Origin: Paraphysomonas bandaiensis | Lineage: Eukaryota > Protista > Chrysophyceae | Length of the DNA stretch: 64,000 nt | Reading direction: 5' to 3' | Assembly (NCBI GenBank): GCA_965644295.1 | Contig: CBFFRP010000284.1 | Coordinates: forward strand, 62,001 to 126,000 | In this document: one piece after another, positions 5,952 through 63,383 of the stretch | Numbering within the stretch: the first letter of the stretch is position 1 | Layout: the number at the start of each line of letters is the position of its first letter | Made by a program: the position numbers and the translations under genes | Notes under the pieces: model-generated | Told to the model about the DNA's origin: nothing | The model's database searches: none | Seen by the model: only the letters and a program-made list of their open reading frames with translations

Positions 5952-6494
5952 AATATTGAATGTCTTTTTATTTAGCAATAGGCGTTAAAAACCCGTTCCG
6001 ATATAGCGGCTAGTTGAATACTAGTCTACTAGTTAGACCTCTACCCATAACTAATCAGCGCAAATTCTATTATCCTACTATTTAACGCTACAGAAGCTGC
6101 TTGTGCGTCGCCGCAAGCACCAAGGTGCAACCACTTCCGTTCTTGATGTTTGTGTGTGAATTCGCCCTGCTCGTGTGTCTGAGGACTCACTGGCGCGTGT
6201 TGTCCGGGGGTCTCCCCTTGGGATACGGTTCCGCCTGACTCTGAGGTACCGGGTTCTGTATTAAGGTCCTGAGTGTACCGAGCACTAGATGTGTGGACTG
6301 AGAGGTTGATGGTGTGGTGGAATGTGGCGGTGTCGCCATGCACCGTTTGGGCGTTGGGCATAGGTGGAGTTGCCGGAGACGTCGTCGCCTTTGTCTAGGG
6401 CCTGTTGGTTTCATACGGTCCGTTGCTATGGTCCTCTGTGTATGGTTGGTAGGGTTCAGAGGTACGGTGGGCGGTGTTCCAGTCTCGGTTCGTC
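5952..6494 (-). mobile_element. Family E non-LTR-type retroposon, copy A (5'-truncated)
   Basis: 12-bp TSD TCAAGTTCAACT at 5940-5951 and 6495-6506; sense 3' end AATAAAAAGACATTCA+ATATT; remnant ORF ends PKGRPPDNTRQ*. Confidence 0.85.
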
Positions 6495-8185
6495 TCAAGT
6501 TCAACTTACTTTTATCAGTTGATTCACCATCCAAATAATATGTCTACAGTTGATTCAGCAGTATTATAATATAGATTCAATAGCGTGCAATGAAATAATA
6601 TTAGATAAACGAATGTATATTGTAACCGCATACGATTGTGACTGTACAGTATTGTTGTATTGATTGGTTGAAGTGTGCCACACTGTACAGGTGTAGCAAA
6701 GAATATATATATATTTAACCATTAACGAGTGCAAAAACCCGAGTTTTAAACTTTAGACAAGGGAAGATACTCTTTATCCGAAGTGAACAATATATGCAAA
6801 TTAAATTGTAGCTGACCCTCGTGATGTTGAAAACTTAATATTATATTGTATAATAGCTATTAGTAGTTTGCTCACTGTAAGAAGAAATAGATGCTTCCTG
6901 ATTAACATGAAGAAAACAAATGAGAAGTCATATTAGGTAGTTCAGCCAATTTGACCGGGTTGAATAATATTTCCCATTGTTAGATAACGACTTATTAGCA
7001 GCTAAACTTTGTAGAAACGCTTAGACTTTATGCAGAAAAATTATAAATTAAGCGATATCATTCACCATTCATTGTCATTCACCAACTCAATTTATCTCTA
7101 CTATATACCAACCATTTCTAGTACGATCTTACATAGTCACTATCTTGTACAGTCAATATATTATTTCAGTTTCAGAACTATAATACGGTTTTCATAATGC
7201 GGTTACCTACTGCTGTATTCTTGAGTAACGGTTATAATTCAAATATCTTAGAAACTACAGCTTTTAATTGCTCTCAAACAACAGCAAAACTCAACACCTA
7301 TTTTTTTTTCTGATCGCACACAGTTAATGGTTAATGCAGTACTACTTATTAGAATATGGATCTTATTCTAGTATATTCAGTATGTCACTTGAAGACAATG
7401 TACGAGAATACAGTGAAATATAGTGATGTACAAATGCTGTGATAATATTGAGAAACTGAAATAGTTTGATCTTTCAAGATATGTTCAGTAACGAGAGGTT
7501 CGCATATGTAGGATATTATGCAGGGATTATAATGAGTTAGTGTTGGTTATCACAACTTCGTGTAAACGATATTAATAAATCTATCTAGTCTTACGACAAA
7601 TTCTCTCTGTGATCTAGCTTAAAATGAGCATTTCTCAATACTACTAAGTAAAATGTCATGTTGATTGCAACCAATAAAAACATGTATGACTCACTTTCAC
7701 TGTCAACCACACAGGCGGTGTCATTTTTAAACCTATTAAAGTTTCCATTTGTTCCTACTAAAACAACTAAAAAGTGTCACTTGTTCTAAATTTTGCTGAT
7801 GGTAGTTGAGCTGTATTGAAATTTTGTAGAATCGATGAAATTTTAATTGCGCCGACATTGATGAGAAATGTATATTACATTGAGGTGTGTTAATTTGCAC
7901 TCCACGTGCGGTTGGAGCTCAGCTAAGTTTACCAGATATTCGATATTCATATCTCAATGATACAGTTGAAAAGTTACGAATCTATAACATGACACCTTTA
8001 TGTATTACAATTATCAAGTAACGAATAGAAGAACTATAAGCCACTTAAATTGATCAACAATAAATACATTATAAAATAGGGGATATCTAAGGAAAAGAGT
8101 TGAAGTAACAACACAATCAACTCAGAGCAGGTATTAAGTGTTATTTCCGTCCACAACGCGTTTATGGCTAATGTAGAGTTCTAAA

Positions 8186-61078: not shown

Positions 61079-61666
61079 CCCTCAACAAAGTCGGACTCAC
61101 ACCTTTTCGTGGTGTTCTGGGGGATAAGCACCGGAGAGATTCTCTCTGGGAAATTAACGTGAGCCGCAAACATAGACCGCAGATATTCTTCTTCCCAGTC
61201 ATAACGGAATGCTTGTGTGGTACAAGAGGCACCAATAAGTAAGTGTCACTTGTGTAGAGTGTAGAGTGTAGACGTCGTTGGGCCCTGACGAATTAACAGG
61301 CATCTGGGATCTGGCACAGAGCCCACCTCTAGGCATCTGGGGTATTGGACTGTCTACTGAAGTCAAGCATCCAGGCTGTTTGCTGTTCACCTCAAGAACT
61401 CAAAAAAACTGAAGTCAGCAGATGTCAGGTATATGAACATACTGCTTTCTCACTGCCTTTGCTTTGAGTGATGGAGTGAAAGTAGTTGCACCTTGGTGCT
61501 TTCGGCGACGCACTAGCAGATTCCGTAGTTACAGGTTAGTTAGTTACAGGTGAGTTTGTACTAGTTAGTTACAGGTAGACGTCTATCTAGTTTGACTAGT
61601 TTTCATCTAGCTACTAAGCTGGTGCTGAATCTTAACGCCTATTGCTAATAAGAAGACTTTCAATAA
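61079..61666 (+). mobile_element. Family E copy H2: full short-subfamily element with an HDV-like 5' fold (61079-61165)
   Basis: Starts CCCTCAACAAAG like copy G; ends GACTTTCA at 61662; head-to-head with H1. Confidence 0.8.
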
Positions 61667-63383
61667 CAGACCTTGGTGTTTTAGTTGTTAATTTCGATAA
61701 ACTGCAAGGAACCTCTAACTAACTAAGAAAACTCAACTTAAACGCCTTCTTTAGTTAGACAATCCTATAATAAAGATAGAAAAGCAGAGCATTTAGTGGC
61801 CTCGTGCTCTGATATTGGTACCAGGTAAATGGTTGATATTAAAGTTGAACGTCATCTCAGGACAAGAACGATGCAATGATAACGACTACTAACATGGTTC
61901 CAAAACAGTTAGTGTGTTACTATTACAATTTACAGAACCAAGTCAGTCAATTTGAGAGCTCGAAGTCATCCTTCTTCCGCTTTCTTTTGGAAAGTGGAGC
62001 TGACAACTATGTTAGATACACTTTCTGAATATGAAAAATTCCCAACCTCGCTCGTTTTCACCAGAATAAAACTTCTGAAAAATTTGAATAGCTTCATCCT
62101 GCAGTATTCCAGACTCAATTTCATAAGGAGAAGGACTACATCACTGGTGAGTCATGTTTCAAGTTGCCATTTGCATTACCTCTCATGGTGAAGAGACAGA
62201 ATCGATCCATTTCCTCCAAATCGTGTATTATGACAACCAAATATAACTTTCCGTACACCTACTCTGGGAAATTAACGTGAGCCGCAAACATAGACCGCAG
62301 ATATTCTTCTTCCCAGTCATAACGGAATGCTTGTGTGGTACAAGAGGCACCAATAAGTAAGTGTCACTTGTGTAGAGTGTAGAGTGTAGACGTCGTTGGG
62401 CCCTGACGAATAAACAGGCATCTGGGATCTGGCACAGAGCCCACCTCTAGGCATCTGGGGTATTGGACTGTCTACTGAAGTCAAGCATCCAGGCTGTTTG
62501 CTGTTCACCTCAAGAACTCAAAAAAACTGAAGTCAGCAGATGTCAGGTATATGAACATACTGCTTTCTCACTGCCTTTGCTTTGAGTGATGGAGTGAAAG
62601 TAGTTGCACCTTGGTGCTTTCGGCGACGCACTAGCAGATTCCGTAGTTACAGGTTAGTTAGTTACAGGTGAGTTTGTACTAGTTAGTTACAGGTAGACGT
62701 CTATCTAGTTTGACTAGTTTTCATCTAGCTACTAAGCTGGTGCTGAATCTTAACGCCTATTGCTAATAAGAAGACTTTCAATAACAGACCTTGGTGTTTT
62801 AGTTGTTAATTTCGATAAACTGCAAGGAACCTCTAACTAACTAAGAAAACTCAACTTAAACGCCTTCTTTAGTTAGACAATCCTATAATAAAGATAGAAA
62901 AGCAGAGCATTTAGTGGCCTCGTGCTCTGATATTGGTACCAGGTAAATGGTTGATATTAAAGTTGAACGTCATCTCAGGACAAGAACGATGCAATGATAA
63001 CGACTACTAACATGGTTCCAAAACAGTTAGTGTGTTACTATTACAATTTACAGAACCAAGTCAGTCAATTTGAGAGCTCGAAGTCATCCTTCTTCCGCTT
63101 TCTTTTGGAAAGTGGAGCTGACAACTATGTTAGATACACTTTCTGAATATGAAAAATTCCCAACCTCGCTCGTTTTCACCAGAATAAAACTTCTGAAAAA
63201 TTTGAATAGCTTCATCCTGCAGTATTCCAGACTCAATTTCATAAGGAGAAGGACTACATCACTGGTGAGTCATGTTTCAAGTTGCCATTTGCATTACCTC
63301 TCATGGTGAAGAGACAGAATCGATCCATTTCCTCCAAATCGTGTATTATGACAACCAAATATAACTTTCCGTACACCTACTCT
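61144..63383. repeat. Tandem duplication, 1118-bp unit
   Basis: ORFs repeat at +1118; CTCT microhomology at 61144, 62262 and 63380; one substitution seen. Confidence 0.92.

Follow-up and report, generated by a model that had tools for sequence, protein, structure and literature searches.

A structured 3' terminus shared by a large SET-domain LINE and two non-autonomous families in Paraphysomonas bandaiensis

A window of 64,000 nucleotides, positions 62,001-126,000 of contig 284 (G000:C284; CBFFRP010000284.1) in the 62.5 Mb assembly of Paraphysomonas bandaiensis (GCA_965644295.1, 669 contigs), contains dispersed repeats with a common 3' terminus. This terminus is the structured 3' untranslated region (UTR) of a large autonomous APE-type long interspersed nuclear element (LINE), which is located elsewhere in the genome, outside the window. 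Two non-autonomous families with bodies of their own, C/D and G, carry the same terminus as a tail. Very probably the LINE is active, its tail was acquired by C/D and G, and the enzymes of this LINE or of a sister lineage copy both families in trans. The initial annotation, made from the letters of the window, had described about eleven copies and fragments as one modular family of retroposons without reverse transcriptase (RT), with a 12-bp target site duplication (TSD), at least three different bodies on one terminus and a single autonomous partner outside the window.

A BLAST search of the window with the terminus 13528-13807 recovered every copy and fragment that had been listed. The matches were located at 5953-6228, 32229-32503, 34505-34777, 37004-37192, 61480-61665, 62598-62783, 61010-61074, 50699-50747, 45368-45405 and 60928-60955. 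The common terminus has a length of 150-280 nt and ends, as described before, with GAC(A/T)TTCA and a short (TA)n or CTA tail. The aligned termini consist of three parts: first a stem-loop block that is conserved (GGAAGTGGTTGCACCTTGGTGCTTGCGGCGACGCACAAGCAGC), then a middle rich in A and T, in which the short tails of copies F and X lack one 32-nt segment, and finally an invariant end, ACGCCTATTGCT-(A)AATAA-NN-AGAC(A/T)TTCA, followed by ATA(TA)n or CTA. The tail was found once per element and always at the 3' end; the flanks of the elements are unrelated and carry TSDs.

In the genome, the 280-bp terminus had more than 2000 first-look candidates. The search scored only 40 candidates, so that the genome copy numbers given here are lower bounds. 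All 40 scored matches of the terminus were 98-100 % identical, and most of them extended upstream into one long element, the LINE (LINE1), whose copies are collinear over more than 5 kb in the longer genomic stretches. One 5'-truncated genomic copy (L033) has a truncated open reading frame (ORF) of 1718 amino acids with the domains Exo_endo_phos and RVT_1 directly upstream of the tail. Genome search and extension in the 5' direction thus located the postulated autonomous partner with endonuclease and RT. A fuller version is present on an ENA contig of 11,291 bp (L071), which is 99 % identical to genomic copies such as C146:359191-370595. This contig encodes ORF1 with 349 amino acids and ORF2 with 3175 amino acids (1639-11166), the latter with a SET domain (residues 1254-1358), an APE endonuclease (1419-1656) and an RT (2113-2405). 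ORF2 reaches about 35 nt into the 280-bp terminus before its stop codon. The first 1700 nt of the ENA contig are matched from base 1 onwards by at least six genomic copies, thus the true 5' end of the LINE is further upstream and its length is at least 11.3 kb. The RT is distantly similar to human L1 ORF2p (E = 2e-7). Only ten relatives of the LINE protein were obtained among 5.8 billion proteins; all but one are unnamed, and a family name is attached to none. A transcript from MMETSP falls into the same 90 % protein cluster, which suggests that the LINE is transcribed. The 3' ends of the LINE differ in truncation: in 10 of 29 loci the similarity breaks off at various positions in the last 1.1 kb, and a TSD is seen at several of these junctions. 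The genome also contains many copies, at least 13 of them long, of a second LINE family with about 70 % identity, and a contig from TARA Oceans (L072) contains a sister LINE with 75 % amino acid identity to LINE1 at the end of ORF2.

Several features of the LINE were observed in passing. It is unusually large, and its SET domain is of the PR/SET-like methyltransferase type and directly precedes the endonuclease. In ORF2, the N-terminal stretch of about 1250 residues is without a Pfam match. Relatives of up to 3455 amino acids were present in marine assemblies; a metagenome scan with ORF1 found no relatives. On contig C394, a stretch of 1188 bp occurs with 100 % identity at 78759-79946 and at about 85506-86693, as a direct repeat flanking a truncated LINE of 5.6 kb. 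This repeat may reflect an artefact of the assembly, a tandem duplication or a target duplication of unusual length.

Copies A and B of the window are ordinary dead-on-arrival, 5'-truncated copies of the LINE, since both are collinear with its 3' end at 98-100 % identity and copy A holds the last codons of its ORF2. Copy A (5953-6495, minus strand, 543 bp) consists of the last 102 ORF2 codons and the 3' UTR; in tblastn it has 95 % identity to ORF2 residues 3074-3175. Copy B (13527-13806, plus strand, 280 bp) comprises the ORF2 end and the 3' UTR. Both are flanked by TSDs of 12 bp, AGTTGAACTTGA for copy A (about 5940-5951 and 6495-6506) and GGCATATAGTTT for copy B (13515-13526 and 13807-13818). 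Beyond the 102 codons of copy A, tblastn found no coding sequence for LINE proteins in the window. The initial statement that no RT is encoded holds for the window, with the qualification that copy A carries the end of an ORF2. Of the three bodies, C/D and G remain; the supposed body of A and B is the 3' end of the LINE itself.

The tails of C/D and G are 75-88 % identical to the LINE 3' UTR and have the same fold; the terminal 35 nt and the fold are kept across all tails. RNAalifold, applied to 19 non-redundant tails (LINE1, C/D, G-type and others), predicted a 5' stem-loop and a long-range helix around a hairpin. Seven pairs stay paired through changes on both sides, e.g., AU in nine and GC in seven sequences for columns 39/79, and GC in eleven and AU in six sequences for columns 136/208. 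Pairing was present in 95 % of the cells, compared to 26-52 % with slid partners. Twenty-two cells were compensatory, in shuffles 8.1 +/- 2.6, and none of 500 shuffles reached 22. The predicted fold fits a recognition of the tail as a structure. A resemblance of the start of the tail to the Pr77 signature of trypanosomatids was considered and dropped: this stretch is the end of ORF2.

C/D is a discrete non-autonomous family on the shared tail, with elements of 1.71-1.83 kb and at least 40 copies in the genome. Among 41 genomic matches with 86-100 % identity, 33 have their start between query positions 722 and 767, the other eight being 5'-truncated. The full-length copies have a fixed 5' end and start with TCTCTGCCCTACGAT; at the 5' junctions 2-7 extra nucleotides are present, mostly ending in AT. 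TSDs of 11-16 bp, most commonly 12 bp, were found in 11 of 13 young copies. As the tail ends with (TA)n and the targets are rich in A and T, the length of a TSD can often not be fixed exactly. Similarity of C/D to the LINE is confined to the last 275 nt. Two full-length copies are in the window. Copy C (32232-33938, minus strand) has two extra nucleotides at the 5' junction, a 12-bp TSD (about 32219-32230 and 33941-33952, TACTATATTATA) and an orphan ORF of 442 amino acids at 32543-33871. Copy D (34506-36254, minus strand, 1749 bp) has no detectable TSD and an orphan ORF of 456 amino acids at 34817-36187. A fragment of 62 bp (34395-34456, minus strand) is 86 % identical to the internal C/D segment 34894-34957, which itself contains a relic of the ORF2 C-terminus of the LINE. 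In the C-terminal part of the C/D ORF, this ORF2-end relic is situated in frame upstream of the present tail, which hints at two successive tail captures. The ORF also contains a 14-amino-acid tandem repeat of 42 bp (35458-35616 in the window); its copy number varies, always with the frame kept, hence the element lengths of 1708, 1750 and 1834 bp.

G is a separate non-autonomous family of about 590 bp. More than 40 genomic matches with 75-93 % identity have a sharp 5' end (CCCTCAAC; CCCTCAACAAAGTCGG) and unrelated flanks; the younger copies carry TSDs of 12-14 bp. Apart from the tail, no similarity of its sequence to the LINE was found. The full-length copy G of the window (61079-61665, plus strand) starts with a head at 61079-61170 and ends with a long-type tail at 61473-61665. 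Copy F (60926-61076, minus strand) is a short-type tail of 151 nt; F and G stand head-to-head, 2 bp apart, both without a TSD (60926-61665). Copy X is interrupted. Its 5' part (50699-51042, minus strand) comprises head and body of the G type, with 77 % identity to positions 1-299 of G, and the start of a tail, its 3' part (45285-45405, minus strand) a short-type tail that ends with TTCACTA. The two flanks of X, CACCCGAAAGT and CACCCGAAAAGT, form a slipped TSD of 11/12 bp. Thus the G-type head and body occur on a long tail ending with TTCAATA in copy G and on a short tail ending with TTCACTA in copy X, and this is the real modularity of the system. Copy E (37004-37192, minus strand) is a tail only; its 189 nt are 96 % identical to the C/D tail, end with TTCACTA and lack a TSD. 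A diverged G-type head at 44465-44560 (plus strand, 73 % identity) was absent from the initial list. At another locus (L011:2692-2729, minus strand) an unrelated body follows the first 38 nt of a G-type head, so that the 5' part of the head is found on another element type. A metagenome scan with the first 20 nt of the G head yielded seven chance matches with no head behind them.

The insertions of these elements are supported as products of target-primed reverse transcription of the LINE type, as had been concluded initially, by the TSD, the short tail, the 5' truncation and the untemplated 5' nucleotides. For 29 curated elements, direct repeats of at least 9 bp joining the flanks were scored against mismatched flank pairs. 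They were present in 16 of 29 true pairs (55 %) and in 1.8 % of the mismatched pairs; the repeats of four truncated LINE copies were cut off by the limits of the scored stretch, and by eye these TSDs are 8-14 bp. The three exact 12-bp TSDs reported for the window were found again for copies A, B and C, and copy X was the reported fourth case. With TSDs mostly of 12 bp in the window and in the genomic C/D copies, a stagger of about 12 nt is maintained. The 5' ends had been described as variable. In the window this applies to the LINE copies only, those of C/D and G are fixed.

A likeness of the repeats to short interspersed nuclear elements (SINEs) or short internally deleted elements (SIDEs) was proposed in the initial annotation. 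Non-autonomous bodies on a LINE tail are indeed present, and the LINE-derived 3' part of SINEs is found in both families. ARAGORN detected no tRNA in the window, and no Rfam family matched the window at the gathering score. At E values up to 10, the heads of G and C/D matched no small-RNA family; only chance and simple-repeat matches were obtained. As a tRNA, 5S or 7SL head, and with it an RNA polymerase III head, is missing, C/D and G do not qualify as SINEs in the strict sense. Both heads also had no similarity to the ENA contig, which stops short of the LINE 5' end.

Under the preferred reading, an active LINE whose structured tail was acquired by C/D and G, the ORF2 protein (ORF2p) would bind the conserved tail and nick AT-rich DNA. 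The terminal (UA)n would anneal at the nick and prime cDNA synthesis, and a second-strand cut about 12 nt away would result in a TSD of about 12 bp. Incomplete copying would leave 5'-truncated LINE copies such as A and B. RNAs that had acquired the tail, those of C/D (about 1.75 kb, orphan ORF) and of G (about 0.59 kb), would be copied in trans. The LINE, its truncated copies, the TSDs, the discrete families and the conserved tail fold were observed. Tail recognition by the RT, the mobilisation in trans and the pairing of LINE and family are presented here as a proposal, with the mechanism taken from what is established for LINEs of the stringent type. Several points weigh against it. The compensatory changes in the tail trace to few splits between subfamilies, thus few independent events are behind them. 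TSDs were not found for copies D, E, F and G in the window. The tail of C/D is only 85 % identical to that of LINE1 and the tail of G only 75-78 %, so that the drivers of C/D and G may be sister LINE lineages.

The last point leads to the strongest alternative. Sister LINEs with matching tails of their own would drive C/D and G, and several pairs of LINE and partner would exist instead of one guild; to this we assign a probability slightly short of even. The low tail identities and the abundant second LINE family of the genome argue for it, as does the sister LINE from TARA Oceans, whose ORF2 end is closer to the first 50 nt of the C/D tail than that of LINE1. Against it, the terminal 35 nt and the fold common to all tails would allow cross-recognition. 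The single partner assumed in the initial annotation is therefore uncertain.

It is rather improbable that C/D is protein-coding and semi-autonomous, i.e., an ORF1-only element like HAL1 or a retrogene with a captured tail. In 9 of 13 copies a sense ORF of 447-489 amino acids is open, and its lengths differ by multiples of three. None of 1000 composition shuffles contained an ORF as long (461 versus a maximum of 310), and words of the element occur in polyA metatranscriptome runs. However, the ORF, rich in P, S, T, H and C, has no Pfam family, and among 1.84 billion representatives only its own copies and low-complexity matches were obtained, no outside homologue. Similarity to ORF1 or ORF2 of the LINE was absent except for the relic of 11-25 amino acids of the ORF2 C-terminus. 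In a test for selection by codon position, 8 of 21 shared variants were synonymous versus a fraction of 0.26 expected at random, a difference without significance.

Little remains of the literal initial version, in which all copies including A and B form one modular RT-less family with three bodies on one tail. The lack of an RT domain in the window and the common tails speak for it, but the collinearity of A and B with the LINE 3' end and the ORF2 codons of copy A refute it for these two copies, and as a whole it is very improbable. Least probable, to a negligible degree, is an origin of the repeats as long terminal repeats (LTRs) or terminal inverted repeats of another element or as segmental duplications: two of the places, H and 30429, are segmental duplicates and a copia element resides among the copies, but each element has one tail, only at the 3' end, the flanks are unrelated and carry TSDs, and the copia LTR has a different sequence.

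The head of G may be a ribozyme similar to that of hepatitis delta virus (HDV); we regard this as a tentative assignment, more doubtful than probable. A consensus fold was drawn with P1 (CCCUCA/UGGGGG) beginning at the first nucleotide of the element, P2 (GG-CUCGC/GUGAG-CC), P3 (ACC/GGU) with a 7-nt loop and P4 (CCGGAGA/UCUCCGG) of 7-8 bp. The J4/2 consensus AAACUAAC was present in 10 of 14 copies; copy G of the window has a U at the candidate catalytic C. The candidate fold needs an atypical linker of 3-4 nt between P3 and P1. Pairing was found in 88 % of the cells, compared to 35-53 % with slid partners. Covariation in an alignment of mostly dead copies (A3), in which MAFFT set diverged copies out of register, was not above that of shuffles. 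Nested folds of the heads recovered P2, P4 or P1 with energies like those of shuffles (z -0.4 to -1.4). In the diverged head at 44465, P1 and P3 are kept through changes on both sides of the helices, as judged from a hand alignment only. Rfam assigned no HDV, CPEB3 or drz family to the G head at E values up to 10. A first generic double-pseudoknot descriptor had about 100 matches per strand and missed the heads. After post hoc relaxation it fitted 0.2 % of the window positions and 3 of 16 heads without a mismatch, which is weak evidence. In a wider scenario, a ribozyme would define the 5' end of G, and the giant SET-domain LINE would provide tail and enzymes, as a system like NARTc/RIME in a stramenopile. 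Bodies such as the ORF-bearing C/D with its two nested ORF2-end relics would have been captured by template switching onto the tail. We consider this scenario unlikely as a whole.

Two of the places counted as copies are segmental duplicates and therefore not independent insertions, which reduces the initial count of about eleven, although all of these sequences are present. The copy at 30429-30793 (minus strand) is the 5' part of copy D with 365 bp, duplicated together with 748 bp of its upstream flank: 30429-31541 and 35890-37002 are 100 % identical over 1113 bp. A TA/TG simple repeat next to copy D (36258-36301) is found in duplicate near 30797-30840. Copy H (62262-62783, plus strand) corresponds to G positions 66-587 and originates from a tandem duplication of 1122 bp, in which 61144-62265 and 62262-63383 are 99.9 % identical.

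Copy X was split after its insertion, as a Ty1/copia LTR retrotransposon (45406-50698, minus strand) with identical LTRs is located inside it. This element does not belong to the retroposon family; it has LTRs of 293 bp with 100 % identity and a gag-pol ORF of 1532 amino acids, and a 5-6 bp duplication accompanies the insertion. It is very young. A partial, rearranged copia at 37193-38987 consists of LTR nucleotides 1-174, a deletion of 272 bp and 1.6 kb of the gag region, and abuts copy E abruptly. An origin of E and this partial copia as a template-switch chimera was considered and rejected: the copia part begins at the first base of the LTR, not at the transcript start.

The long ORFs of the window encode a myosin, a KH protein, ankyrin repeats, an MFS transporter and the Ty1/copia polyprotein. 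Among named sequences, those closest to the myosin are from stramenopiles: it has 58 % identity to a transcript of Paraphysomonas (Chrysophyceae) in MMETSP and 35-38 % to oomycete myosins. The ankyrin-repeat ORF (27731-29011) contains internal tandem repeats of about 174 bp at 27752-28670 with 77-85 % identity, the ordinary repeat structure of that gene. Data from 14 studies, marine metagenomes as well as polyA metatranscriptomes, contain words of the C/D element; the host is therefore a widespread marine protist.

Judged from its sequence features, the system resembles a stringent-type partnership of a LINE with non-autonomous elements, ordinary in kind, in a poorly studied organism. In the literature searched, no paper was found that describes transposons of the host or this retroposon system. 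A TSD of 12 bp is characteristic for the trypanosome pairs ingi/RIME and L1Tc/NARTc. These pairs, ingi/RIME of Trypanosoma brucei and L1Tc/NARTc of T. cruzi, combine an APE-type LINE with a non-autonomous partner (PMC3185411, PMC4035085). Common to them and to the elements described here are the TSD of about 12 bp and, possibly, an HDV-like ribozyme exactly at the non-autonomous 5' end; here it is a candidate from sequence, and the head matches no Rfam model. RIME and NARTc arose from their LINE by internal deletion, have both ends in common with it and carry poly(A) tails; for C/D and G the end found in common with the LINE is the 3' one.

Stringent-type pairs of LINE and SINE with a shared 3' tail include UnaL2/UnaSINE1 of eel, and CR1 or Bov-B with their SINEs (PMC3747384). 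As in the present system, the structured 3' UTR of the partner LINE is placed on non-autonomous elements, a short repeat instead of poly(A) forms the end, and TSDs and 5' truncation occur. The differences are the missing RNA polymerase III head, one partner of 1.75 kb with a long orphan ORF, a marine stramenopile as host and an unusually large LINE with a SET domain. The SIDEs of R2 (PMC3414825) are likewise RT-less, rely on a 3' RNA recognized by the LINE protein and have a 5' end defined by a ribozyme, here a candidate; however, R2 is site-specific with a restriction-like endonuclease, and the bodies described here are unrelated to the LINE outside the tail. The LINEs Perere-3/SR3 of Schistosoma mansoni carry twister-variant ribozymes (PMC8501958). 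They are a further case of a self-cleaving RNA motif, here a candidate, tied to non-LTR retrotransposition, with another ribozyme class and another host.

For the annotation of the genome, the repeats should be masked as one LINE and at least two dependent families. The LINE SET domain and the possible ribozyme head are parts of separate interest. With many copies of 98-100 % identity, P. bandaiensis harbours a very young system of a LINE and non-autonomous elements in a marine stramenopile. Its structured tail without poly(A), together with the regular stagger of about 12 nt, would make the system a clear natural case, outside animals, of a LINE that recognizes a specific tail ('stringent' recognition).

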